Origin: Perkinsus chesapeaki ATCC PRA-425
Taxonomy: Eukaryota; Protista; Perkinsozoa
Length of the DNA stretch: 53,280 nt
Direction of reading: 5' to 3'
NCBI GenBank assembly: GCA_013115145.1
Contig: JAAPAO010000202.1
Coordinates: 1 to 53,280 of the forward strand
The position numbers and the translations under genes are program-made. Of this stretch, positions 1 through 15,804 are shown piece by piece; the stretch's first letter is position 1; the number at the start of each line of letters is the position of its first letter. Below the pieces are notes generated by a model that saw nothing but the letters and a program-made list of their open reading frames with translations, had not been told where the DNA came from and ran no database searches.

Positions 1-2
1 TT

Positions 3-197
3 ACCTGGTCGAGGCCGATGACTAGCCTTATAGGCGGTGTCAACTTGGTGGCCTTATATCTATTACTTATTGTGGTCTGGTATGCGTTGTCCGCCCAAGG
101 CCGACGTCAATCATTGACGGTCAATGTTTTGTGTGAATCTTGTCTCCCTCATGCAACGCTAGAAGCGTATCTCAGAGTTATCACTGTAGCGCGCTAG
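3..197 (+). CDS. Possible C-terminal end of a membrane protein (cation/Ca2+ exchanger-like last helix), partial
   Basis: Frame 3 from the window edge reads TWSRPMTSLIGGVNLVALYLLLIVVWY, a hydrophobic helix loosely like the last TM of CAX exchangers; too short to be sure. Confidence 0.25.
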   Translation, partial: TWSRPMTSLIGGVNLVALYLLLIVVWYALSAQGRRQSLTVNVLCESCLPHATLEAYLRVITVAR

Positions 198-350
198 TAG
201 AGGCTGCTTGTAGCACCAAGCTTCGTAGGGTGGTTCAACTCCAAATCGTGAGTCATTAGCACTAACGTGCTGCTCGCTTGAGCCTTGTTTCGTGACCCAT
301 TGCAGCTGATTATCAATCAGTGATTTTTGATTCACTTTTTCGAGTATCTG

Positions 351-3300
351 ATGCCCATAAACTACAATCATATTGTTATCGACGAGGCCCGCATCGAACA
401 AACGTGTCATTTCTGTAGGACGGAAGAGGTTCCTGATGCCGCTGGTCTATGGGTTGGTTGTGATAGATGCTTTGCATGGTTTCATGTCCCCTGTGCTCCT
501 AATTATGGTGATGCGTTAGCTCAGCAGTCTCAGACTAGCCGGAGCTCTCGCACAAGGTCCGGTACTAGAAGGTCGAGGTCTACCAGAGGTAATGGAGTTG
601 ACAGCGATAACCTGTGGCTCTGTCCAGGATGCCGCCTCTCCCGAGAACGTGAAGGAGACCTAAACTGTAAGGCCATTGTTACACCGGTTCTCAAGCTAAT
701 CAATGACCTCCAACTCGAATTTGTTGATGGTACACACAATCTGGCCAAGGAGCTGGTGAAGGCATCGTCGAAGGTTTCTTGTCGTGATTCTGAGTACAAG
801 AAGATTTGGAAACTAGGGGGTGAGCAGAACTCTCCCGTGAACTTGTTGCTTTCGGCTAACATCAAGTGTAAGCTGTCGCTTGGCCGTAAGAAACTACCTT
901 TCTTCGACTTTGCCCGTTTTGTGAGTCTCGAGCTCAGCGGTCTGGAGGCGGAGGCCTTATCACAGCTTGACTACTATCTGAGCCACACTTTTGGTGCCCT
1001 TATCTGCCGTGCTTTGAATATCACAAGTTTGAAGTATTTATGGGAAGCTGATCCTCACAAGCAGGCGGAGACGGCAGCGGAGGAAGAGACGCGTACATGT
1101 CGAGAGAGGCAGGTGACTTTATTCCTGCGCGAGCAGGCAAGCAAGATTGGCCGTGAGGAACTGGATACTCACAGCGTATGGAAAAAGGTCCGCCGCTCTC
1201 TCGAAGGGCTTATTCGTTGTGGTACCAATACTGGTTTACTATCTCGTATACAGTCAGATATGTCTGGCCGCCCTGGTATTATTGATCTTCGCCAGGGGAT
1301 CGCCGACTTTATGCCAGAAGGATTTATAATGATTGCAAGATCCAGCGAGGCCATTGCAGAGAGCCAGGTGACTGTTGGAAATGTGGTCTATGTCGCTAAA
1401 GGGTGTTTTAAGGATGACGAGAATGGTGGTCATGCCTTGTACTATTCGATAGCTGACGGAGAGACCCCTGCACGTGGCTACAGAGCTGTGATGTACATCA
1501 GAGCTAGTGCAGCAGAAGCTGTATGTGATATCTGTTACAAGAATCGACACTCTGAGCATGCTAAGATACGGTTCTGTTGCTGCTCTGGTTCGGTTTGCTA
1601 TGTGTGCCAGTTCCAGCACGCTATTTTACTGTTCTCTAAGAAGCATCCGTTAGCGTGCGTTGTCTGTCGACAGCCTCTACCTGATACTTCTGCTTGTTGG
1701 CGAGTCGCTTTCGATGCTCACAGCTTCATTACCATACTGATAGCGTTGAATCCTCGAAGTCGAGAACTTCTCGAGTCTCAAGGAGAAGAAGCAGTGGTAA
1801 TACCCGACAGTGACGCTAACATCTCTAAAAGTTTGGCCTATGATGTTTTGCTCAACGTTCACTCTGGTAGCAACACCACCGAAAATGATGCTATGACACG
1901 TAGAGAGGTTGCAGCTTTATATCGACAACAGTTGAATCTGTCGCCAGAGCTAACTGATGAAGAGGTTATGAACAGAGCTAGGCGAGCTGCAGAACCCCAA
2001 GGCCTGCTCGATACAGCGCAGCTTCCGGCAGATTTAGCTGCATACCTCCCTGTAGCTGATGCTGGTGGGAACGGCGCGGGCCAATCATTGCCTGACGTGC
2101 TCGATCGTATAATTGCTGACGAAAACATGCTCTCAGAGGGCGATATATCTCCTATACGTAGCGGCCCGGTGTCTATATCTGACGATGGTTCTCCACTGCA
2201 ACGTTCCATGTACGGCTCGAGCGTCGCTAATGATGATGAGGATCGTGATGTTGGTTCTGCTGACGACGCTAATGATGACGAGGGTCGTGATGTTGGTACT
2301 GCTGGCGACGCTGGTGGGAATAATTCACCCAGCTATGTTACTGGTGACGGTAGCACTGCGCAAGCCCTGCCATCATCTGGACCATCTCTTCTCTCCAGTA
2401 CCTCGAGAGGAAATGGTGGATCTAATCTCTTACTGACGAGTGCCAGTGGATTGCTTCCAGCTGGCGGACATGCAACTCAACAAGCCAGCGTATCATCACT
2501 TGGCTTTGATGAGGAAGCTAGTGGTGTGATCAATAGTGGAGTCACTCGAAATACATCTGATCATGCTGTGGTGGGCATTTCTTCTGGATCTATCCTACAT
2601 AGCAATCCACATCGGGCAAATATGCCCTCGGTGATCAGCTCTTCGACGTCGACCGGGGATAGAGGTGCTTCAAGGATTTTGAGTTCTTCGGCAAGATCTT
2701 CTCCGCTCCACGCTCGGCTAGCTCCTGGTGGTAATTTGTCTAACGGCAATCGTACTTACATGGTTGGAGCTGATCAACTGGAGGATGCGACAACCCCTCA
2801 ACCGTTGCGGCAGTCCGACGCGGCCTTGGAGGAGAGTGGTATGGTTATACAAGGTGAACAACAACCTGCTCGAGCTTCTAATCCCAGCGGCACACCTCCT
2901 GGAGCTCCTAATCTCAATGGTACACCTCCTCGAGCTCCTAATCCCAATGGTTCAAATCCTCATGGTGCTACTATAGCTGGGATGACTTTCACTTCGACCA
3001 ATAGAAACAATGAGGCTTTCTGGTGGGAGTCACGATTGTATGCCAGAGAAGGTAATGAGAGCCGTATTGGTGTACGGTATCGCTGCCGCGGCCCGGGTCA
3101 CTGTACGTCTTCATGCACTTTGAGCGTCGACAGAAGTCAGTGGGTTCGTAGGCCGTCGAACCATGTGCCCGGCTGTGTTGCTGATCCCCATCGTCAAGAA
3201 ATATCCTTGGCTGCTCGGCGTCTCCAAGCCTCCGCTCGCGCTGACGAGAATATGACGGTTTTGACTGCTCTAACCACAACTGGCAATAATGAGTATGCTG

Positions 3301-4430
3301 ATACAAGAGATCTCCGCAATCTCCGAGAGCGACAGTCTTATACTATGAGAAGATCCCTTCAGCTTCCCGGTCTACCCACTGGTCCCATAGGTTCGCGACA
3401 GTTTATGGTTCAAAATCATGAGAACATCACTCAATACGGTGGGCAGACACTCCAAGGTCAAGCTTTCGTTCGCTTCAACGACGTTGACGAGGGTGTGGCC
3501 GTCTTCGCAGCAGATGAATGTATTCAGAGATGGAGAGAGGTCGATATGTTATTCATCGACTGTACCTTCTTTGTGACACCTCCTGGTTTTTCGCAGACGC
3601 TCACTGTAACAGGCGCTATCGGTACTCAGTTCATTCAGTTGGCCTATATCTTACTGCCTGATAGACAGGAGAGAACATACCGCTTGGCTCTGCGTGAACT
3701 TAAGCGTGTTGTAGAACAGGTGAATGGTAGCTGTGATGTGGTCGCGGTTATGACAGACTTTGAGAATGCTTTGCGCAACGCCATTACCAGCGTCTTCCTG
3801 GTGCAACCTCAAAATCTTCGTGGATGCCTCTTCCATGCCAGCAAAGCCTGGTTTAGTAAGCTTCGTGCTGAAGGTCTAGCGGCGGTATATCGTGAACGTG
3901 TTTCTGAAGGCGAAGTACACAGTCCCCTGAATCGATGGCTACATGCAATTTTTGGTCTGCCGTGTTTGCATCCTTCGGAGGTCACTCGAGTTTGGAATGA
4001 CCTAAAGCTTGGCCAACCTCTAGATCAACGGGCTGCTGTTCTTGTCGAATATCTCGATCGGTATTTCATGCAACCAACATCTACTTGGCCACCTATCTAC
4101 TGGGCTGCGGCGGCAGGAGAGCGGCACAGAACTAACAATGCAGCAGAGTCCCTACATTCTACTCTAAAGAGATTGATTGGCCGAAGGAGGCCCAACATAA
4201 GGTTTTTCTTGCACAAACTGAAGGTTCATCATGAAGCCGTTCGTGTAAGACTCCGTTCTACAAGAATTCCGTCAAGCCGCAGATCTCCCAAGGAGCTGCA
4301 ACGGTGTCTGATAACTGATAGATACTTGGCCGGCGATATGACTCTATATGAACTACTCGAGAGTTTGGGTCGCATAAATACCTTTCCCAACTTGAGTGCT
4401 GATGGTGATATGGGTGATGATACCCAGTAA
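351..4430 (+). CDS. Mutator-like (MULE) transposase fused to N-terminal PHD finger and C4C4 RING finger
   Basis: Single uninterrupted ORF (first ATG at 351). PHD C4HC3 at 405-632; RING at 1524-1676; FLYWCH-like YRC..C..NH at about 3040-3170; MULE motifs FIDCTF (D 3558), VMTDFE (D 3756), GCLFH, RTNNAAESLH (E 4146). Confidence 0.9.
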   Translation: MPINYNHIVIDEARIEQTCHFCRTEEVPDAAGLWVGCDRCFAWFHVPCAPNYGDALAQQSQTSRSSRTRSGTRRSRSTRGNGVDSDNLWLCPGCRLSREREGDLNCKAIVTPVLKLINDLQLEFVDGTHNLAKELVKASSKVSCRDSEYKKIWKLGGEQNSPVNLLLSANIKCKLSLGRKKLPFFDFARFVSLELSGLEAEALSQLDYYLSHTFGALICRALNITSLKYLWEADPHKQAETAAEEETRTCRERQVTLFLREQASKIGREELDTHSVWKKVRRSLEGLIRCGTNTGLLSRIQSDMSGRPGIIDLRQGIADFMPEGFIMIARSSEAIAESQVTVGNVVYVAKGCFKDDENGGHALYYSIADGETPARGYRAVMYIRASAAEAVCDICYKNRHSEHAKIRFCCCSGSVCYVCQFQHAILLFSKKHPLACVVCRQPLPDTSACWRVAFDAHSFITILIALNPRSRELLESQGEEAVVIPDSDANISKSLAYDVLLNVHSGSNTTENDAMTRREVAALYRQQLNLSPELTDEEVMNRARRAAEPQGLLDTAQLPADLAAYLPVADAGGNGAGQSLPDVLDRIIADENMLSEGDISPIRSGPVSISDDGSPLQRSMYGSSVANDDEDRDVGSADDANDDEGRDVGTAGDAGGNNSPSYVTGDGSTAQALPSSGPSLLSSTSRGNGGSNLLLTSASGLLPAGGHATQQASVSSLGFDEEASGVINSGVTRNTSDHAVVGISSGSILHSNPHRANMPSVISSSTSTGDRGASRILSSSARSSPLHARLAPGGNLSNGNRTYMVGADQLEDATTPQPLRQSDAALEESGMVIQGEQQPARASNPSGTPPGAPNLNGTPPRAPNPNGSNPHGATIAGMTFTSTNRNNEAFWWESRLYAREGNESRIGVRYRCRGPGHCTSSCTLSVDRSQWVRRPSNHVPGCVADPHRQEISLAARRLQASARADENMTVLTALTTTGNNEYADTRDLRNLRERQSYTMRRSLQLPGLPTGPIGSRQFMVQNHENITQYGGQTLQGQAFVRFNDVDEGVAVFAADECIQRWREVDMLFIDCTFFVTPPGFSQTLTVTGAIGTQFIQLAYILLPDRQERTYRLALRELKRVVEQVNGSCDVVAVMTDFENALRNAITSVFLVQPQNLRGCLFHASKAWFSKLRAEGLAAVYRERVSEGEVHSPLNRWLHAIFGLPCLHPSEVTRVWNDLKLGQPLDQRAAVLVEYLDRYFMQPTSTWPPIYWAAAAGERHRTNNAAESLHSTLKRLIGRRRPNIRFFLHKLKVHHEAVRVRLRSTRIPSSRRSPKELQRCLITDRYLAGDMTLYELLESLGRINTFPNLSADGDMGDDTQ
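2226..2309 (+). repeat. 42-bp tandem duplication inside the transposase linker
   Basis: Encodes ANDDEDRDVGSADD / ANDDEGRDVGTAGD. Confidence 0.9.
2865..2954 (+). repeat. 3 x 30-bp tandem repeat inside the transposase linker
   Basis: Encodes PARASNPSGT / PPGAPNLNGT / PPRAPNPNGS. Confidence 0.9.
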
Positions 4431-5494
4431 TTATAATCGACATTATCGATTTCTGACTATCCTAGGCTCCATAGACATGCCACATTCGATAGGTTTGTGG
4501 ATTTCGTTTTCTTGTGGGTGTTCGTTTCCGTTTTCTCATCGTATGGTTGTTCTCTCTGTCCTTGTTCACTATTATGGTTATTTTCGAGCTGTTGTGAGAT
4601 GCTTTTCTGTAAGAGTGTAGAGAAATGATTTTTTAAAATTTAATACAAATCAGAGTATTTTGGTAAACAAAACCTTCGTAACTGCTCTACCCGCAGCTTG
4701 CGCCATATATTCTGGGATCCAGATGGACTACGGTAATAACTGACGCAGTCCAAATATCATCTCCACTTTATTGTCAGGTAGTCATCTTGCAAGCAAGACT
4801 TCCATGAGAAGCCAATGGATTTTGATACGGCGGGTTAAGAAGTGTATCGATATTCTTGTTTTGACCCAGTGGTTTGTGAAGACTCTTTTATTAGGTACTG
4901 CAGCGGTTTCAATTGATAAGTTGATAACTTTTTAATCGAGATAATGATAGTAGCAGTTTCTGATATGCTGTTCCAGTTCATGAAAGTCGTGTTGAGTTAA
5001 CAAGTTAAGGTCACCTTAACAAGGTGATAAACGTAGCCCTGGTTTAACGCGAACAGACAGCCTCGCAGTTAGAGGCAATAATGAGAGTAGTAGACCCCCG
5101 TGAAGTCAAGAAATAGAATAATACTGAACATATTATGGTACTGTACTATGGAAGCGAATGAAACGAGCTACGGGAAAACATATAAATACGGCGAATTCAA
5201 GACCGATTGGTGCTAATAAGGCTACGAGAATCACATTGATTGCGCAAAGCAAAACGACGCGGTAATCAAACAGCTATGAAAATTAGGATAAAACAACTTG
5301 TAAGAGCTGCGCGAATGTGCAAGTCGCATGGATAATTAAAGTGTATTAGGGCAGAGACGCGTTAGCAACCGTACTACGTGGAAAAGTGGGAGTGTATAGT
5401 CCGCAATCTGACAAGCTCTAGTGTAATCTCAAGTGTAACGTCGGAAGTTCGAAGTGGAAACCTAGCATGCGTTCACCATGGAACTTCCGTGTAC

Positions 5495-5788
5495 TCATTG
5501 GGTAGAATTTGATATATAAAGCCACCAAGTGGGATTCCCCTAGCAGAATATATTAGGAAAAGTAGGCATAAACCGGTATGGGAAGGAGATACAGCACTTA
5601 AGATGGCGTAACCCGGGTAGTAAACCCGTGTAACAGCGCACTCGCCGCAACCCACACGAAAAGCATCGCATTATGAGGAAACCTGCAAATCTAACGGAAA
5701 GACCAACAAATAGGCGAAATCCAGCGCTTTTTGGCGAAATACGTCTGTTTAACCTACGAAAGTGGTGAATGGCGTTGACATGACTCAT
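5495..5788 (-). CDS. Possible small spliced single-TM protein, head-to-head with the gene at 6107
   Basis: One plausible splice gives MSHVNAIHHFR-RFPHNAMLFVWVAASALLHGFTTR; downstream exon choice is ambiguous. Confidence 0.3.
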
Positions 5789-6106
5789 TTTGCCAAGGCG
5801 ATCTTGTCGAAACGCAGAACCAGAGGCAGAATAGATTACATGGGCGCGCGAGTTGGCCAAATTTAACAAGCGGTTTACAACAAGGTGTGGCAATAACCGG
5901 TAAATTTCTTTACCAAGTCGCTGTAATACCGTCTAGAATAGGCCCTGTAACGTGAAAGAACAAGTAGGTGAGAGTGTAATGAATTTGGGAAATCGCCGAC
6001 GTTGGTGAGTTGGCGAAACCTGGCGCTCCGCCAACTTCGTAAAGGTGAACGCGAGTTCTAAGGCGTTTAAGTGTAGGCTTTTGTTGAGCTTGCTCCCACA
6101 ATCTCA

Positions 6107-7023
6107 ATGCTAACCTTTCCAAGGAGGTCCTTAGGGTTGGTCGCTGGTGCCCGCAGATTCATCAGGCCTCTTGGCGCGAGGTATTTCAGTGTCTACGAAG
6201 GTAGGTTGAGCTTGCATCTCAGAGATCATAAGATTCTCGTTTTAGGCCAGACTGTTCAAGAGTCCGAGTTAATTCCACAGGAGGACGACTGGGTCATCGA
6301 GGAGACCAACTTCTGTTTGGGAAGGTCGGCATTTTAACTAGCTTCGTGCGGCCTCGGATGCCCAGTGCCCTATCAGGAACTGCTATGTTCGTTTTCGCGA
6401 GGAGGATGATCTGGCTAGGCGTGCTCTCCATCAGATGGATTCCCAGTTGAATAAGATGCATACTAGGTTGCGTGATGGTAGCCTCTCCTTCTTCACTCGT
6501 ACCACATAACCCCTCCCTCAGGTACCGTTATCCCCTATATGTCTTTTCACCCGGATGAGATGGTCGATAGGCCCGGTAGGTCGCCCGAGTCTTGCTCAGC
6601 AATGTCAATCCTTCGTGTCAGCTCCCGTCCATACTTTCACGGAGAAGCCTTTGTTGAAGTGGACATGGGATGAGACCTACGAGGAGGCTTATGATGATCC
6701 CGATGCTCCTTCTTACAAGCGAGTCCCTTATCCTGGTGATGCTCAGACTGAGGCACCTGAAGAGGTAGGGCCGCCGGTGAACTGCTTGTATCATTTTATG
6801 CACTTTCCTCCAGGTCGAAGAGCCTTGGAAAAAGCTCAAGAAGTCCACTAAGACTGCTGAAGCCGACCCTTCCCCTCCTGATGCGGAGACCCAGCAGCCT
6901 CAAGAGATTCCAGATGCCGAAGCCACTCCATCTGAGTCGGCAAAGGTAGGGATCGTAGGACCTTTAAAGGGAAGGGTATTTTATCTGTGTCAGGGCAAGA
7001 ATAAGAAGTCGGGCAAAAAGTGA
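6107..7023 (+). CDS. Uncharacterised protein with predicted mitochondrial presequence (7 exons, about 210 aa)
   Basis: Six GT-AG introns (e.g. 6201-6245, 6325-6376) splice to one open frame: MLTFPRRSLGLVAGARRFIRPLGARYFS...EETNFCLGRNCYVRFREEDDLARRALHQMD...PVHTFTEKPLLKWTWDETYEEAY...GKNKKSGKK*. N-terminus is Arg-rich, acid-free, with an RYFS cleavage-like motif. Confidence 0.8.
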
Positions 7024-7520
7024 GGTTGCTGCTGCCGCGTATAGTGGCACGATGATAATATTGCTCTCTACTATCGTACATCCAGTGGCGACTGCTGCCC
7101 TGGACCTAGCACCTCTACACCGTCTTTTTGCTGTGTATTTGTGGTCTATTGCCATTGGGCCATGATAGCCAAATGAAAGTGGGACGAGGCTCATATCAAT
7201 TTTGTTTACCCTCCTTATGCTTGCGTTCAGTACCAGCTACCAAGGATCACCAGTAGGAATGGTGCCCCTGCTGCAGAGTGCTGCAGCGAACAGGACCAGT
7301 CATTGAGGAGATGTGCAGCATCTCCATGCGTATTTAGATCAATCAGATTGTAGAAACGGATATCTTTGTATCCTTTCTACTCGCTGCTGGTGTAGCAGCG
7401 TAATTCCGCGGACACAACACGGCAAAGGCAGGACAGTCCATAACGGACTATAATGGATGTTAGGGGAACGACATGAAAGTAGAACAGATAGAAATAATAA
7501 TCCGAACTAGTCCAGGAACC

Positions 7521-7622
7521 TGTGCAACCACGCCGGTACCAAAAGCCAGTAGGATAGCCGTTACAAACATCTCGGCAAAGCACTTCTTCCAGAGTGGTGG
7601 CTCACCAGAAGGCGACTGTGCC
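7521..7622 (-). pseudogene. Aquaglyceroporin 5' relic (TM1 region only)
   Basis: About 100 bp nearly identical to roughly 11420-11520 of the second aquaporin; start codon and the rest of the gene are absent. Confidence 0.85.
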
Positions 7623-7639
7623 TACCGCGGCAGCTCAGA

Positions 7640-8284
7640 AGATCACCTACGAAACCATTGTTGGCTTGAATCTGAAGATTATTTGTTGCTGCAATTGAAC
7701 CAAGAAGCACTTGGGGAGAAAAGTGCTATGCTGTTCAGCCAAACATGCCCTTGTATATGCCCAACGAATTTTGCTTCCTGTCAGAAGTTTTTCGTCGCTC
7801 AACCGCATTCGTATAGGTCATCTCGCCCCCTCGCCAATTGAATGCAATTTGAAGTCCCAGAAATGAAAATTGTCTCTTTGTGTTACTATCAAAATGAGTA
7901 AGTATCCTTCAGAATTATCCGGTTTAGATCGTATACTTCGGAAATGGTATGTACTATCAACATAAGCCGTACCCGTGAGAAACAGCAGCCCGAAGCGCCT
8001 AAGGGAGAAGTGCGAACTAGAACCTGGCCAATGGAATAAAGTGTACAGACGGTAGTCTGAAAAGACAATGTGACTAATGATGCGAGCTAAGTGTTGAAGC
8101 TAGGCAATTCAGGGCCTATGTTTCGATATTGAATGGCTCAGATACGGTGATGTGACGATCAAAAAAGTTCACCTGTAAATATCAGCACTGACGATTTCGA
8201 CAAGTAGTTGTAGGAAGCTCGAACCCTGAACAAATAATTATAGTGACGGCAGAGCACTGCTCTAGATTGCAATCAAAATAGTAG
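7640..8284. repeat. Diverged duplicate of the inter-aquaporin spacer at about 11690-12826
   Basis: Shared blocks such as ggtttagatcgtata, tactatcaaca(c/t)aagccgtacc, gaacctgg(c)(c/g)aatggaataaagtgtacagacg, gatcaaaaaagttcacctgt. Confidence 0.85.
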
Positions 8285-9088
8285 CTACAATAGGGTGAGC
8301 CTTTGGAGAGTAATACCAATAGTTCCGCCTAGCATGGGGCCGACTATAGGGACCCAGAAATAGTAATTGTCCGCCGTGAAGACCTGAGGGCCCCATCCTG
8401 CTAAAGCAGTGAATAATCTAGGACCGAAGTCTCTTGCTGGATTTATAGCATAACCAGTATTGGCCCCAAAGCAGAGACCAATTGCTAGTAAGGCAAGACC
8501 GACGAATCCAGCGATGTGGAAGCGATTGGCGGGAGCTTTATCCTTGCTGTGGATAACCGCAGCTATCGCTGTTGTGAGGAGAGCAGTGCCAACCATCTCA
8601 TTAACGATCTGGTTGAAGGCGTTTGTTCCTGGCCTGGGATAGGTCGCAAAGACACCGGCATTGGAAAGGTCCTTCACTTCCATTTCTTGATAGTAACATA
8701 GAAATGTTATAGCAGCACCGATGAACGCCCCCAAGATTTGTGAGCCAATGTACGGCAGAAGGTTCCTCCACGGCATAAGTTTTGAGACACAAAGAGCCAG
8801 CGAAACCGCTGGGTTTAAGTGAGCACCAGATATGCGGACACTGGCAAGGATGCCGAATACCAAACCGCAAGCCCAACCAATGCTGAGAGCCAGGTAGTTG
8901 CCGACAACATCCACTTTTACTTGGGCCACTACACCCGTTCCGAACGTAACCAGGACAGCCGTCCCGAACAATTCGGCTATACATTTCCTCCAAAGCGGGG
9001 CTTCACCAGACGTTGACTCAAGGGGTGCAGCCGATGAGCACCCGGAGGAACGACGCCAATTTTTGAGGGAAATTCCGGAACCACTCAT
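8285..9088 (-). CDS. AQP: Aquaglyceroporin (MIP family), copy 1, intronless
   Basis: SGAHLNPAVS and GYAINPARDFGPRLF motifs, six hydrophobic helices; Asp after second NPA marks the glycerol-facilitator class. Confidence 0.97.
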   Translation of the reverse strand: MSGSGISLKNWRRSSGCSSAAPLESTSGEAPLWRKCIAELFGTAVLVTFGTGVVAQVKVDVVGNYLALSIGWACGLVFGILASVRISGAHLNPAVSLALCVSKLMPWRNLLPYIGSQILGAFIGAAITFLCYYQEMEVKDLSNAGVFATYPRPGTNAFNQIVNEMVGTALLTTAIAAVIHSKDKAPANRFHIAGFVGLALLAIGLCFGANTGYAINPARDFGPRLFTALAGWGPQVFTADNYYFWVPIVGPMLGGTIGITLQRLTLL

Positions 9089-9214
9089 TTCGCTGAAATG
9101 GTGAAGCGTAATCCGGTGAACACAACACGACGAAGGCCGAACAGTCCATAACGGACTTCAGTAGATGTTAGGGAAACGGCATGACAGAAAAAGAGATACA
9201 AATAATACTCTGAA

Positions 9215-10064
9215 CTAGTTCATTAAGGCGTGGACATCGGTCTCTCCGAAACAAACAGTAATACCTTGAGTGGTTTAACATGGAAGGCATGAAGAGTACG
9301 GTCACGTTGTATTAGACGCAAGGTCACTCACTCCTTCCACGAAAATCCTTAGGTTTTATATGGACCTGTGTGTGAACATTGAACATGGTTTCACGGGGGT
9401 ACTTAGGGATACCGATAACAAGGGCACTGAATACCTGCCAGTTGAGCGTAGAGTTATCCAAGGGCGTCATCTCGGAGTAAACAGTCATCCGAAAAGAGCC
9501 AGAGGCAGATGGGCGGGAAGAGAAATCTTTCCCGGTAGTCCAAACAGATGCTCGCAGTATTCCCTTACCCGAAATGACTGAGGATTCTACTGGCACCTTG
9601 AAAGCATCAGCAACATGTGTCGCGGTACTACCATTGAAGTAAGTAGTGTTACCAAACGTAGCAGCTGATATGATATTGGTACTCGTACAGATGGTCGTAG
9701 CGGCTCGGATTTGCGGAGGTTTAAGTTGGACGTAGACTGGTGCTGCACAGCCGCCTGCCCGGGGAATCATTCCCTCTACACTCCCATTATGAAGCGTCAA
9801 GATGACACCGAAAAGGACCGTCTTCTCAGGATGGTCTACATCAAACATGTAGAGATCAAAGACGATCCACTTCCTCAGAGGATCCAGAACGCCCGTTAAA
9901 CAATAGGGCACCTTCTCGACTTGCTTCGTAATGGAACAATTAACCGGAACCGAGAACGACGCGGGATAGTCCGTGAGACTCCCAGGCATTTCATTGCTAA
10001 CGTCATGACCCAAGCTTCCAACAGTGAACAAAGCCATTATGGTGATGGCGAATAGAGGGATCAT
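9215..10064 (-). CDS. Putative secreted glycoprotein of unknown family (2 exons)
   Basis: Signal peptide MIPLFAITIMALFTVGSLG from ATG 10064; five N-x-S/T sequons; intron 9265-9331 then ITVCFGETDVHALMN*. Paralog fragment at 31276-31709. Confidence 0.8.
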
Positions 10065-10142
10065 GAGATGGTAGGGAGCCAGATGAGATGTGATGATTGA
10101 GGATGCCGAGCGAGAATACGCGGAGCGATAATTAGCTATATG

Positions 10143-10333
10143 CATCCTCGTAGAGTAGACAGTTTACAACTCAAGGAGCCCCAGACTAAAGGTAACAAGG
10201 TAGAATTAGAGTTTCTTCATAGAGCGCCTTGTCTCCCGTGACCTAACTATATTGGATCCATACACCCAAACTGGGCATATTCCTCACTGCACCCTATCAT
10301 AAGTGAAACGTATTCCACTCGTAAACGCTGGCG
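10143..10333. repeat. 191-bp block, near-identical to 31710-31900
   Basis: Direct comparison shows one mismatch in 191 bp (gagccccagac vs gagccacagac). Confidence 0.95.
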
Positions 10334-10781
10334 TGGGTGGACAGTCCGCCATGGATTTGAGTGAGAAGACGTATATGGATATTGCCTTGCTTGAAGGCCT
10401 GTCTATGGGTAAGGCTGCCTGTGGTCAAACGAATGACCAGGAGAGCCAAGTGGTCACAGTATTAACAACACGAGCCACATGTCAACAGGAAAGTGCCAGA
10501 AGCGCCTCTTTATATTTAATCGATCACGAAGAGCAAACGCAAATCTGGCGAATAACGGTACAAGCGCTAACCTAGAAAACCGAGTTTAATCCAACGGGGA
10601 TAACGGAAGTGGTAAGAGTCGGTGCCACTGGAAAGGAAGGAAGCAATATCGCCAATGCCATGGAGTCGGCCAGTGCTTCTATTGAGTTCGGAGGCTTTGC
10701 TAGCGTGTTAGTATGCTTCAGTAGGCAGAGACTCTGCAGCAGAGTCTAGAATGTATATAAAGTAACAGAACAAGCCCTTGG

Positions 10782-11582
10782 CTACCGCAAAACGAGCCTT
10801 TGGAGGGCCATTCCGATGGTACCACCCATGAGGGGGCCAACTATAGGAACCCAGAAGTAATAGTTATCTGCAGTGAAGACTTGAGAACCCCATCCGGCCA
10901 TAGCACTAAACAGCCTAGGACCGAAGTCTCTAGCTGGATTTATAGCATAACCGGTGTTCACTCCAAAACTAATACCAATTGTTAAGACAACTAGACCGAC
11001 GAATCCAGCAACGTGGAAGCGATTGGCTGGGGCGCTGTCTTTGGTGTCGCCAATAGCAGCAATGGCTGCTGTGAGGAGGGCGCTACCGACGACTTCGTTA
11101 ACAACAGAGTTAAAGGCGTTGTTACCCGCTCTAGGATAGGTTGCAAACACTCCTGCGTTAGACAGGTCTTTTACTTCGAAGTCTTGATAATAGCACAGAA
11201 AAGTAATACAAGCACCAATGAAGGCACCGAGGACTTGAGAAGCAACATACGGGACGAGGTTCCTCCATGGCATTAGGTTGCAGACACACAGAGCTAGCGA
11301 AACCGCTGGGTTCAGTTGGGCACCAGAAATACGGTAGCTGGCAAGGACACCGAAAGTCACACCACATGCCCAACCAATGGCTATGCATAGGTAGTTGCCG
11401 AGGCCACAGACGTTGACTTGTGCAACCACGCCGGTACCGAAAGCCAGTAGGATAGCGGTTCCAAACATCTCGGCAAAGCACTTCTTCCAGAGTGGTGGCT
11501 CACCAGAAGGCGACTGTGCCACCGTTGATGAGCTTCCGGAGGATTGGCGGCAGGTTTTTAGAAATATATCTGAGCCGCTCAT
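10782..11582 (-). CDS. AQP: Aquaglyceroporin, copy 2 (most divergent), intronless
   Basis: SGAQLNPAVS and GYAINPARDFGPR; ATG at 11582. Confidence 0.97.
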   Translation of the reverse strand: MSGSDIFLKTCRQSSGSSSTVAQSPSGEPPLWKKCFAEMFGTAILLAFGTGVVAQVNVCGLGNYLCIAIGWACGVTFGVLASYRISGAQLNPAVSLALCVCNLMPWRNLVPYVASQVLGAFIGACITFLCYYQDFEVKDLSNAGVFATYPRAGNNAFNSVVNEVVGSALLTAAIAAIGDTKDSAPANRFHVAGFVGLVVLTIGISFGVNTGYAINPARDFGPRLFSAMAGWGSQVFTADNYYFWVPIVGPLMGGTIGMALQRLVLR

Positions 11583-12826
11583 TCCATACAAATCATAACT
11601 GAGGATAAATAATGTAAGAGAAACCTTCTCCTGGAGGAGCGCTTCATCGATTTGCTATGAAGGCAGCTCAACGAGGATCTTTGAAAGAAAGACCATCTAC
11701 GATACGGTATCGTCGATATGAACGCTAGCATAACTCTAAAGTTTTGTCTTTTCGGGCTGCCATTACTGGAATTGAAACTTGGCGTAGCTAAGAAGAAGTA
11801 TTTGGGGAGAAAGGGGTTACGCTGTGGAAAACTCGTAACTCATCAAGCAAAGCTGTCCCCTATCTAAGGCCAAACGAATTCTGTTTCCTATCCACCGCCC
11901 TTCTTTTAATGCAGCTACAAGTCCTAGAGAGTCTTATCCGAGTTATTTGTCGATGTGCAGAAACCGATTGCCTTATGTCCGCCAAGGGGTCCATCGAATA
12001 CCTGAGGTATTATACCTCTATTGCGAATCACTCTTCTGACACTCGTTAACATTCTATAGGGAAATTTACTGAGAGCTGTACCTATGGTACCATAGGTAAT
12101 CGAACCTGTTAAAAAATCTGAACCAGCTTTGCTAGCGCAATATACCCGTAAAACGGATCATGAGATATGTCACTGTAATTAAGAGCTGTTGGCATTCGTT
12201 TCGATGCCATTCGCAATGTAATCAAAGCGACGACGAAAAGGTAAGCGCTGTTACATTACAAATAAGCGACTAGTAGTCGTCGACTACAGTTACAACGCGG
12301 TACTGTTGCACAATATTTGTCTCCCTTCACGCAGCGGTGGGGTCTCTTTGTGTTACGTGTCTATCTTGATAGTATGTCTTTCTCGAGATTATTCGGTTTA
12401 GATCGTATATTCCGGGAACGGTATTTACTATCAACACAAGCCGTACCGGGAAGAAACAGTAGCCAGAAGCGCCTCTTGGGCTTTAAGCGAGGAAGAAGTG
12501 CGAACTTGAACCTGGCGAATGGAATAAAGTGTACAGACGCTAGTCTGGGAAGACACTGTGACTAATAGTGCAAGCGGAATGTTGACGCTAGGCAACTTAG
12601 TGCCTATCTTACGACGTGAAACGGCACAAGTACGGTGATGATCAAAAAAGTTCACCTGTGAATATCAGCACTGTCGATTTCGACAAGTAGTTGTAGGTAG
12701 CTCGAAGCCTTAACAAATAATTATACTGCTCTGGAAAGCAATCTTCTGCTCCTCATTCCTCGGGCGGGGCACGGCCTATAAGGCCCTGCAGGCTGCAGCC
12801 TCACTGGGTTGCAATCAAAACAATAG

Positions 12827-13630
12827 CTACAATAGGGTGAGCCTTTGGAGAGTAATACCGATAGTCCCGCCAAGCATGGGGCCGACTATAGGGACCCAGA
12901 AATAATAATTGTCCGCCGTGAAGACCTGAGAACCCCATCCTGCTAAAGCAGTGAATAATCTAGGACCGAAGTCTCTTGCTGGATTTATAGCATAACCAGT
13001 ATTGGCCCCAAAGCAGAGACCAATTGCCAGTACAACAAGACCGACGAATCCAGCGATGTGGAAGCGATTGGCGGGAGCTTTATCCTTGCTGTCGATAACC
13101 GCAGCTATCGCTGTTGTGAGGAGAGCAGTGCCAACAATCTCATTAACGATCTGGTTGAAGGCGTTTGTTCCTGGCCTGGGATAGGTCGCAAAGACACCGG
13201 CATTGGAAAGGTCCTTCGCTTCCATTTCTTGATAGTAACATAGAAATGTTATAGCAGCACCGATGAAGGCCCCCAAGATTTGTGAGCCAATGTACGGCAG
13301 GAGGTTCCTCCACGGCATAAGTTTTGAGACACACAGAGCCAGCGAAACCGCTGGGTTCAAGTGAGCACCAGATATGCGGTAGCTAGCAAGGACGCCGAAG
13401 ACTACACCGCACGCCCAACCAATAGTTATGCACAAGAAGTTGCCGACACCGCACACCTTGACTTGGGCCACCACGCCCGTTCCCAACGTAATTAGGACAG
13501 CCGTCCCGAACAATTCTGCGAAGCATTTCCTCCAAAGTGGGACTTCATGAGAAGTTGGCTCCGGCGGTATAGCCGATGAGCATTCAGAGGAACGAGGCCA
13601 TTTTTTAAGGAAAATTCCGGAACCACTCAT
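12827..13630 (-). CDS. AQP: Aquaglyceroporin, copy 3, intronless
   Basis: SGAHLNPAVS and GYAINPARDFGPR. Confidence 0.97.
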   Translation of the reverse strand: MSGSGIFLKKWPRSSECSSAIPPEPTSHEVPLWRKCFAELFGTAVLITLGTGVVAQVKVCGVGNFLCITIGWACGVVFGVLASYRISGAHLNPAVSLALCVSKLMPWRNLLPYIGSQILGAFIGAAITFLCYYQEMEAKDLSNAGVFATYPRPGTNAFNQIVNEIVGTALLTTAIAAVIDSKDKAPANRFHIAGFVGLVVLAIGLCFGANTGYAINPARDFGPRLFTALAGWGSQVFTADNYYFWVPIVGPMLGGTIGITLQRLTLL

Positions 13631-13708
13631 TTCGCTTTTATGGCAACTGCGTGGGGAACTAGAGCACTACAGTGGCTTGGAGAGTAGTTGACGCAACACG
13701 GTGGTGGT

Positions 13709-14280
13709 TTATGAAACTGACGCCAGCTTGTCGTGATAGTGTTTGATCTGTTCGTGCTCCCGTTGTCGGAGCTGTAACTTGACAAGACTGAAGAGGAAGT
13801 ACGTAAGGAGGTTACTTTACATAACAGGGCCTTATTCGCTCAAGACCCAAAATGTTTTGTTGTCAATCAAGTCCAACTTGATAGTAAACAGGCTACCACT
13901 GTCGACACTGTTGCCAGTCACCTAGAAGAAACATGTTAGTCGGCGATGGTCGATTGAAATGGTCCTTAATAACGAGCAAATACATGATACAACAATCACG
14001 TCTTCTTGCTCTAAGGCTACTGGCCTTCATTATCATCATCATCATCATCTGCTCCTTCATCCTCGGGCCTCGAAACACTCGACGAGTCTTGACGGCTCGA
14101 TGAGTCGGCGATGGTCATGTTACCGAAAAGGCGTCCTTTTCTGGTTGCTCCGAGGACGAGATAACCTTTACTATTTTCACCAGGTTTTCATAATTCAGTA
14201 CGGTTATCCTGCCAGCAAGAGCATTCCGCTGGCCGGGTGACCAGACTGACGGTGCCAGGACTTGGCGTCAGAATGATTTG
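13709..14280 (-). pseudogene. Decayed duplicate of the ET-domain exons of the BET-like gene
   Basis: Aligns to 16417-16800 (QRNALAGRITVLNYENLVKIVKVI; FTIKLDLIDNKTFWVLSNLVKLQ); 22-nt frameshifting insertion at 14232-14253; no bromodomain exons seen upstream. Confidence 0.75.
13938..14116 (-). mobile_element. 151-bp insertion flanked by a 14-bp direct repeat inside an intron
   Basis: agtcggcgatggtc at 13938-13951 and 14103-14116; the paralogous intron near 16630-16674 is short and has only one related motif. Confidence 0.75.
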
Positions 14281-15006
14281 GCACAGGGAGCATTGCTTCG
14301 GCACAATCCCCTCTCTTAGGGACACATTTAGCTGTGGTTTCAGGGCTCAAAGACCCATTGGATTGCATGACGCGCCATCTCGTTTGAGATGTTTGAGAGC
14401 TTTGCATCTCACTGTTTGGAAATAGCAAAGCCTTTATCGAAGTTTCGTACACGTTCAGCATATCTTGAGGAGTGTATCGTTTTCCGGGGTGTATTATTAT
14501 CTTTCAGGGCTAAGGTGGCTTCCTGACGTCCATCTTATACCAGGGGTGACTGTGGGACATTTCCTTCGCTAGTTTGAAGCATCGCCTACGCTGAACTAGT
14601 GACCATCCGCTCGGATGAGCGTCATCCGATGACGGCTACTCCTGGTTGATCTCACCAATAACCCAACATTGCCTGCTAGACTGTTTGTAATAAGGGGCGA
14701 TGTGGAGAGCGTAGACCCAAACAACTAGTATATGTACTTCAGCCACGACAATAAGTGCGACCAAGTAAGAGCTGGATTCTGCACACAGCAACGTGCTCCT
14801 GCAAATATTGCAACCAATATTGAGGAGACAAAGCAGTGCTTATACTAGGGGATCGATCAGGTTACTTGCGGTGATCTCGCGAACAAACGCTCACCAGCAA
14901 GCTCAATGATTGTCTATGTAGACGGGTAGTTCTCGAATGCTCAAAATATAATAAATGAGGACAATCTGCCTTATAATGAAGAAATAGTTACAATATAAAA
15001 TAGTAG

Positions 15007-15804
15007 CTACCATAGAACAAGTCTTTGGAGAGTAATACCAATAGTCCCGCCTAACATGGGGCCGACTATAGGGACCCAGAAATAGTAATTGTCCGCAGTG
15101 AAGACCTGAGGGCCCCATCCTGCTAAAGCAGTGAATAATCTAGGACCGAAGTCTCTTGCTGGATTTATAGCATAACCAGTATTGGCCCCAAAGCATAGGC
15201 CTATCGCTAGTAAGGCAAGACCGACGAATCCAGCGATGTGAAAGCGATTGGCGGGAGCTTTATCCTTGCTGTCGATAACCGCAGCTATCGCTGTTGTGAG
15301 AAGAGCAGTGCCAACCATCTCATTAACGATCTGGTTGAAGGCGTTTGTTCCTGGCCTGGGATAGGTCGCAAAGACACCGGCATTGGAAAGGTCCTTCACT
15401 TCCATTTCTTGATAGTAGCATAGAAATGTTATAGCAGCACCGATGAAGGCCCCCAAGATTTGTGAGCCAATGTACGGCAGAAGGTTCCTCCACGGCATAA
15501 GTTTTGAGACACAAAGAGCCAGCGAAACCGCTGGGTTTAAGTGAGCACCAGATATGCGGACACTGGCAAGGATGCCGAATACCAAACCGCAAGCCCAACC
15601 AATGCTGAGAGCCAGGTAGTTGCCGACAACATCCACTTTGACTTGGGCCACCACGCCCGTCCCAAACCCTACAAGGAGTACAGTGCCAAACAATTCGGCT
15701 ATGCATTTCCTCCAAAGTGGGGCTTCATGGGGAGGCGGCTCGAATGGCTTCTCCGATACATCGGAGGAACGACGCTTATCAACAGCAATTCCGGAACTAC
15801 TCAT
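15007..15804 (-). CDS. AQP: Aquaglyceroporin, copy 4, intronless
   Basis: SGAHLNPAVS and GYAINPARDFGPR. Confidence 0.97.
   Translation of the reverse strand: MSSSGIAVDKRRSSDVSEKPFEPPPHEAPLWRKCIAELFGTVLLVGFGTGVVAQVKVDVVGNYLALSIGWACGLVFGILASVRISGAHLNPAVSLALCVSKLMPWRNLLPYIGSQILGAFIGAAITFLCYYQEMEVKDLSNAGVFATYPRPGTNAFNQIVNEMVGTALLTTAIAAVIDSKDKAPANRFHIAGFVGLALLAIGLCFGANTGYAINPARDFGPRLFTALAGWGPQVFTADNYYFWVPIVGPMLGGTIGITLQRLVLW

Follow-up and report, generated by a model that had tools for sequence, protein, structure and literature searches.

We analysed a 53,280-nucleotide stretch of DNA from Perkinsus chesapeaki ATCC PRA-425 (contig JAAPAO010000202.1; its whole length is referred to here as the window), which carries near its beginning one long open reading frame (ORF) for a transposase of the Mutator-like element (MULE) type. 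The ORF lies on the forward strand at 351..4430 and encodes 1359 residues followed by a stop codon, uninterrupted and intronless. Its frame is open from an in-frame TTG at 327 to 4430, far longer than any other ORF in the first 6 kb of the window, and the ATG at 351 lines up in the alignment with the start of the closest relatives, including one from P. olseni. An earlier sequence-only reading of this DNA had described an intact, intronless 4.1-kb ORF, and indeed there is no stop codon and no need of an intron across 327/351..4430.

The ORF encodes an intact transposase of a MULE family, and the full-length members of its own family share one layout: a PHD finger, a domain predicted to adopt the fold of ubiquitin-specific proteases (USPs), a CNOT4-like C4C4 RING finger, a helical region, a disordered linker, a C2HC zinc finger and a DDE catalytic core. 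Every domain call that the sequence-only reading had made on the PHD finger, the CNOT4-type C4C4 RING and the MULE D-D-E core with its CxxH motif survived testing. The exact protein was absent from the protein collection in which it was looked up, and NCBIfam gave zero matches to its whole length. Rfam found nothing in window positions 1-9000, and a tRNA scan found no tRNA.

Zinc-binding domains and the catalytic core

The PHD finger, of the C4HC3 type, occupies 405..632 on the + strand (aa 19-94), and its ligands are C19, C22, C37, C40, H45, C48, C91 and C94. Pfam PF00628 matched the N-terminal 110 residues, scanned alone, at 26.9 bits against a cut-off of 24, and an insert-free paralog matched the full model at 28.6 bits (cut-off 24). 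A profile made from six family sequences matched 195 solved PHD-finger chains in the PDB with a best E value of 2.5e-8, including those of KAT6A, PHF2, TAF3, ING and BPTF, and the family alignment shows no variation at any C4HC3 ligand or at W43 and W89. An Arg/Ser-rich insert of ~30 residues splits the finger (aa 56-85, nt 516-605, + strand), just as the sequence-only reading had proposed; it is disordered in the structural model, where its predicted local distance difference test score (pLDDT) is under 50. This insert is confined to the lineage of the window copy and its P. olseni relative, and the P. chesapeaki paralog L002 does not have it. Judging from the alignment, W34 and W43 may stand at the positions of the aromatic-cage residues of H3K4me3 readers.

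The RING finger lies at 1524..1667 on the + strand (aa 392-439), with the CNOT4-like C4C4 spacing C392-x2-C395-x13-C409-x-C411-x4-C416-x2-C419-x16-C436-x2-C439. Seven sequences, just 22-48% identical elsewhere, agree in all eight cysteines. The best match of the family profile in the PDB was 1e4u, the C4C4 RING of human CNOT4 (E 3.7e-4), which aligned ligand for ligand and was followed by TRIM32, ARIH1, RAD5 and HOIP. An AlphaFold2 model of aa 380-550 (pLDDT 81) showed a RING fold: the best 24 fold-search rows listed were all RING or U-box domains at Z 4.2-6.4, led by RING1 of HOIP, HOIL-1 and ARIH2 (Z 6.0-6.4). CNOT4 itself matched at Z 5.0, with a root-mean-square deviation of 2.0 A over 52 residues, and PHF7 and 1ur6, the UbcH5B-CNOT4 complex, were also among the RING matches. 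Three relatives are already named 'RING-type domain-containing' in UniRef. Counting against the assignment, single-sequence searches of Pfam and the PDB gave nothing significant for the RING (best zf-RING_4, E 0.57). In terms of profile matching, then, the PHD finger passed its Pfam cut-off, and the RING was recovered by the family profile but not by Pfam from a single sequence.

A conserved helical region with invariant N467 and P468 follows the RING (1689..1994, + strand, aa 447-548) and lies outside the fold-search matches. It leads into a long linker (1995..2975, + strand, aa 549-875) that is of low complexity and poorly conserved, in agreement with the disordered linker described earlier, and that contains 42-nt and 30-nt tandem repeats. 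The repeats at window positions 2225-2312 and 2864-2951 are in frame and consist of acidic D/E-rich and PNxNG-type units. Linker length varies by ~170 residues between paralogs, and long perfect peptide repeats (PPANAV, QQQNLQGGAPP and an acidic 22-mer) were seen after the helical region in the C-termini of the relatives P0003 and P0004 and in P0007/P0014. The linker seems particularly prone to repeat expansion.

A C2HC zinc-finger-like motif follows at 3003..3176 on the + strand (aa 885-942), reading W-x3-R-x-Y, then RYRC, C and H-x3-C, with C912, C918, H938 and C942 conserved. It sits upstream of the core, where MULEs have their DNA-binding finger of the WRKY/FLYWCH/FAR1 type. No FLYWCH or other Pfam or PDB profile matched this region, so that of the FLYWCH-like finger in the sequence-only reading the conserved C2HC motif stands and the FLYWCH label is unproven. 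The DDE core itself (3546..4160, + strand) matched Pfam PF10551 at 38.5 bits on the C-terminal piece (E 1.7e-9) and at 36.2 bits on the whole protein, with a cut-off of 27.6. We assigned catalytic roles from the published MULE signature to D1070 (nt 3558-3560, in F-I-D-C-T-F), D1136 (nt 3756-3758, in M-T-D-F-E), C1159-x2-H1162 (nt 3825-3836) and E1266 (nt 4146-4148, in N-N-A-A-E-S). Both aspartates, the cysteine and the histidine are invariant across an alignment of the window protein and four relatives; the position of E1266, covered by three full-length sequences alone, is conserved in all three. The D-D-E core with CxxH is complete, with its profile above the cut-off and its residues conserved in relatives.

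A predicted USP-like fold between the PHD and RING fingers

Between the two fingers, the sequence-only reading had pointed to ~290 residues of unassigned, globular-looking sequence. This stretch is real and conserved, and structure prediction now assigns it a USP-like fold with a papain-like thumb and palm, probably non-catalytic (660..1508, + strand, aa 104-386). We modelled aa 1-560 with AlphaFold2, giving seven family sequences as the alignment (mean pLDDT 78, about 85-93 over aa 100-350), and aligned the model to 48,161 PDB representatives with VIA-align. The top match of aa 104-386 was USP12 (Z 10.2, 156 residues, 3.5 A), followed by USP35, USP36, USP2, CYLD, USP30, the pseudo-USP Sad1, USP14, USP18 and USPL1. 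The best 47 rows were all USP-fold domains, coronaviral papain-like proteases (PLpro) or other papain-like viral proteases, such as Lpro of foot-and-mouth disease virus (FMDV) and that of rubella virus. When Foldseek candidates were re-aligned, 189 USP chains had a Z of at least 8, and the 50 rows listed were without exception USP catalytic domains; Foldseek's own list held weak matches, mostly USPs. Around 155 of the 283 residues of the domain aligned to USPs, and model residues 196-289 form three long helices. In the model, aa 104-386 thus fold like the catalytic domain of a USP deubiquitinase.

Several results weigh against this assignment. Pfam UCH and UCH_1 gave zero matches at E values up to 10 in all six family members scanned, the family profile recovered no USP among PDB sequences, and no similarity to the Cys box or His box of USPs was found in the sequence. 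The assignment comes from a structure predicted with a seven-sequence alignment and lacks sequence-level support. As modelled, it nonetheless ties the N-terminal module more firmly to ubiquitin than the sequence-only reading, which missed the fold, had done. The case also illustrates that a sizeable conserved domain can be invisible to sequence profiles and yet be nameable by structure prediction.

Aligned ranges place the USP nucleophile at model residue 107-108, at the N-terminus of helix 106-120, and the family alignment shows neither Cys nor His to be invariant where the nucleophile and His box are expected. Because the catalytic Cys and His are not conserved, the domain is probably a pseudo-enzyme, if the modelled fold is right. 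Residue 162, after the conserved Q159, was tried as a papain-type nucleophile and rejected, since the fold alignments put the nucleophile in the first helix at ~107. The window copy alone does have C106 at the nucleophile site and GGH361 ahead of a palm strand, in a context that we take to match the USP His box, and transposon-borne deubiquitinases with intact sites are on record (PMC9741609). It could be supposed from these features that the window protein is an active deubiquitinase that both writes and erases ubiquitin. We consider this very unlikely: C106 and H361 are both absent from all six relatives, including the intact P. olseni copy L006 and the P. chesapeaki copy L002, and a third catalytic residue is not evident. 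The surroundings of H361 are also modelled less confidently (pLDDT 64-73), the positions themselves come from aligned ranges only, and the missing Cys-box and His-box similarity and UCH matches speak against activity as well.

Relatives, selection and the flanks of the gene

When aa 1-470 were searched with HMMER against 1.84 billion representative proteins, seven hits were returned, and all five that span the N-terminal module are P. olseni or P. chesapeaki proteins. A word-based homolog search with the transposase half returned nothing at E values up to 1e-3, and one with the N-terminal profile returned P0001 alone; of the 65 pattern matches that the transposase alignment had in a metagenome scan, not one was confirmed. 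As far as we found, the family is confined to Perkinsus. The same architecture is present in P. chesapeaki L002, a 1186-aa open frame (contig JAAPAO010000239.1, 9995-13561), and in the intronless, 1367-aa P. olseni L006/P0027. L001 is a 99.6%-identical allele of L006 in another P. olseni strain, whose frame runs off the contig end. The public models of these genes are truncated, and we correct them here: KAF4666270, for L002, has 727 aa and ends in a false intron, and KAF4721821 has 959 aa and is cut by a contig end.

Identity matrices separate at least five deeply diverged lineages, each of them kept by purifying selection. The window copy groups with P. olseni L006, at 75% identity in the core and 48% in the N-terminal module, and the second P. 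chesapeaki copy, L002, falls outside this pair. A distant P. olseni relative, P0010, pairs a PHD finger with a MULE transposase, and three distant copies, L003, L004 and L005, have interruptions or are missing parts such as the core. At L003 (7711-17744, P. olseni), P0010 is flanked by two ammonium-transporter genes of the opposite strand, and its coding matches are in different frames with gaps of ~50 and ~860 nt, which may be introns or disruptions. At L004 (5360-9338, P. olseni; P0014), as in P0007, ~110 residues of the USP-like domain have been lost and the PHD and RING fingers kept. No DDE core could be detected downstream in this lineage, which is either a decayed copy or a transposase-less derivative.

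When the window copy is compared with L006 or L002, the proportion of synonymous differences (pS) is 0.75-0.85 in every domain and so is saturated; we therefore give it beside the proportion of nonsynonymous differences (pN), since saturated synonymous divergence (dS) allows no ratio of nonsynonymous to synonymous divergence (dN/dS). The zinc finger and core have a pN of 0.14-0.19, the PHD, USP-like, RING and helical regions one of 0.31-0.45 and the linker one of 0.47-0.49. With pN well below saturated pS, the accessory module is as old as the lineages and under purifying selection, not a fragment carried along passively. Since capture of host sequence by MULEs is known and the public gene models of the relatives are inconsistent in length (727 aa and 959 aa), one might suspect a module passively captured in Pack-MULE style, or a fusion created by assembly or annotation. 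However, four assemblies made independently from P. olseni and P. chesapeaki show the same layout in a continuous frame, which excludes an assembly chimera, and the short public models are explained by the contig end and the falsely placed intron. In the N-terminal module, moreover, conservation extends to relatives of 22-29% identity, and no zinc ligand varies. Capture or artefact is thus largely refuted already, and we regard it as extremely improbable.

The sequence around the gene bears on whether it is mobile. A conserved non-coding block that two non-syntenic relatives also have, a candidate cis-acting site of the element, lies ~1.5 kb 3' of the stop codon at 5983..6031 (+ strand). The 41 nt at window positions 5991-6031 are 93% identical to L006 7334-7374, likewise ~1.5 kb past the stop, and the block is 81% identical to L002 16439-16486, where it lies beyond ~1 kb of extra minisatellite. 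The block is on the same strand in all three copies, with a chance expectation of 0. Downstream of the ORF, the window and L006 have nothing else in common, and the two loci are non-syntenic on the 3' side. In L006, the motif TTGGCGAWA occurs six times in 15.8 kb, always within 415 nt that include the block. Upstream, neither L002 nor L006 nor the window showed an inverted partner for the block. A stem-loop was considered for the block and rejected, as its arms show no co-variation among the three copies.

Tandem repeats flank the ORF on both sides in L002 (8862-9593 and 13667-14565, with 134-bp and 58-bp units) and in L006 (1047-1539 and 5866-6250, with 62-bp and 136-bp units), and the L002 units show no sequence relationship to those of L006. 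Around the window copy no such repeats were found within reach, which upstream of the ORF is 350 nt. Positions 1..41 (+ strand) bear a marginal likeness to the 62-bp upstream repeat unit of P. olseni L006 (score 31 against a shuffle maximum of 29), which suggests that the window may start inside the element's 5' repeats and that the 5' end lies outside it. Two candidate repeats were discarded: one of 17 nt, inverted, at 43-59/5514-5530 is not flanked by a duplication and, taken as a terminus, would leave the 3' block outside the element, and an 18-nt motif of the L002 upstream repeats with one inverted downstream copy is within chance expectation.

We lean modestly towards the view that the ORF belongs to a cut-and-paste element of low copy number, one that is active and autonomous or was so recently. 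Mobility is favoured because non-syntenic loci share the 3' block, because L002 and L006 have flanking repeats and because distant copies are broken. Evidence that counts against it begins with the ends: no terminal inverted repeats (TIRs) or target-site duplications (TSDs, 8-11 bp in MULEs) were found in the window, with its 350 nt upstream, or around L002 and L006, although TIR-less MULE groups exist (PMC6446971). Further, each lineage is apparently single-copy per assembly, and the lineages are very old and yet intact in all three close ones, which also fits domestication. The genes could instead be domesticated, as MULE-derived host chromatin or ubiquitin regulators or as programmed-rearrangement nucleases, immobile and kept by host-level selection. 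Such an origin would account for the lineage pairs that cross species (window/L006 and P0003/P0011), the strong constraint on all domains at saturated dS, the occupation of the same locus in two P. olseni strains and the window copy's lack of the flanking repeats seen in L002 and L006, and domesticated MULE proteins that keep the DDE motif are known (PMC3558436). Yet the non-coding block travels with the ORF between window and L006 loci that are non-syntenic 3', none of the catalytic D, D, CxxH and E has been lost, several family members have breaks or truncations like those of decaying transposon copies, and the repeats on both sides of L002 and L006 are of subterminal type. Domestication is possible but, on this evidence, somewhat unlikely.

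Beyond the element, the window contains five ORFs in a row on the - strand at 8285-15804, of 265-273 aa each, and the translation of the first is major-intrinsic-protein/aquaporin-like, with two NPA motifs.

Possible function and known systems

If the protein is the enzyme of a mobile element, its C-terminal half would act as a standard Mutator cut-and-paste enzyme, with the zinc finger and DDE core binding and cutting the element ends. The PHD finger may dock the protein on histone H3 tails, and the RING may recruit ubiquitin-charged ubiquitin-conjugating enzyme (E2~ubiquitin), as CNOT4 does with UbcH5B, and attach ubiquitin to chromatin close by, to a host factor or to the transposase itself. 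Lacking a conserved nucleophile, the USP-shaped domain could serve as a scaffold that binds ubiquitin or E2 and does not cleave. Such a protein would read chromatin and ubiquitinate a host factor, as the sequence-only reading had proposed. The element might gain by choosing targets in open chromatin, by ubiquitin-dependent signalling for local repair of the excision break or by being shielded from silencing; repair signalling was suggested earlier for protease-bearing transposons (PMC2836005).

Compared with the MULE transposases MuDR MURA, Muta1, Hop and Jittery, the protein has the same PF10551 DDE core, the same D...D...CxxH...E order and a zinc finger upstream. It differs in its ~870 extra N-terminal residues with PHD, USP-fold, RING and long linker, in the absence of a SWIM finger and in that no TIR or TSD was found. 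In the survey of MULE groups by Dupeyron et al., a PHD finger is listed for Rehavkus only, whose mark is that finger plus a minisatellite before the 3' TIR (PMC6446971). Compared by description, Rehavkus resembles our family in having a PHD in the transposase, and L002 and L006 have minisatellites 3' of the ORF; it differs in that it is reported from arthropods and annelids and no RING or protease-fold has been reported for it, and the window copy is without a minisatellite. Among some 50 MULE groups, the single RING is that of MuDR-37_PI from Phytophthora infestans (PMC6446971, Table 1). Also compared by description, this MULE shares the possession of a RING with ours, but its finger is of the C3HC4 type and replaces the SWIM finger of its subgroup, and no PHD or USP-like domain is listed for it. 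In P. marinus, 21 MULE-domain proteins have been counted, with no such module described (Swart et al., PMC3558436). Our literature search on Perkinsus, Mutator/MULE, PHD, RING and deubiquitinase found the architecture described for no transposon. The suspicion that no known MULE combines an N-terminal PHD with a RING was thus upheld, as we found no catalogued MULE of such architecture, and we could not find the module of PHD, USP-fold and RING described before in Mutator-superfamily transposases, where it appears to be new.

Ubiquitin and SUMO proteases are recurrently carried by transposons (PMC2836005, PMC9741609). Ulp1, sometimes with PHD, and OTU occur in Ginger1, Mutator and Helitron proteins, and a Trichomonas vaginalis protein joining transposase_11 to Peptidase C19 has been described (Bao et al., PMC2836005); VTD deubiquitinases are found in Helentrons (Erven et al., PMC9741609). 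Like Ulp1-MULEs and Ginger1, the OTU and VTD Helitrons and the T. vaginalis protein, the Perkinsus family fuses a transposon protein to a papain-like fold of ubiquitin or SUMO proteases. Here, however, the fold is predicted to be USP-like and not Ulp1, OTU or VTD, its catalytic dyad is not conserved and a RING finger accompanies it.

The RING is closest to that of CNOT4/Not4, its best profile match, in its C4C4 spacing, though the protein has no RNA recognition motif (RRM) or other CNOT4 domain and no homology to CNOT4 outside the finger. Pairs of PHD and RING, as here, are typical of E3 ubiquitin ligases that act on histones in chromatin, such as UHRF1 and PHF7.

RING fingers are very rare in transposases and are best known from the Chapaev/RAG1 line, where with a partner PHD they link DNA cutting to the state of chromatin; beyond Chapaev/RAG1-type elements, the RING finger was reported not to be encoded in transposable elements (Kapitonov and Koonin, PMC4411706). 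RAG1 (a RING with a Transib-type DDE recombinase), RAG2 (with its PHD) and Chapaev with a RING (PMC4411706) bring together, as the window protein is predicted to, a DDE recombinase, a RING E3 and an H3-reading PHD. The Perkinsus enzyme belongs to Mutator and not to Transib, has its PHD and RING in one polypeptide and has a RING of the C4C4 type. One could go further and propose that a Perkinsus lineage independently built the RAG1/RAG2 logic into one polypeptide with a USP-fold domain added, that the module actively writes, and perhaps in the window copy erases, ubiquitin on targeted chromatin and that some lineages may by now serve the host as factors of programmed DNA rearrangement or of chromatin; we think this extended view unlikely. 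The assembly of PHD, RING and DDE itself looks independent of the RAG line and convergent with it. A Mutator family that has kept a PHD finger, a deubiquitinase-shaped domain and a RING through very long divergence would be a second, independent system for studying what a cut-and-paste enzyme does with histone marks and ubiquitin in target choice, repair or escape from silencing.

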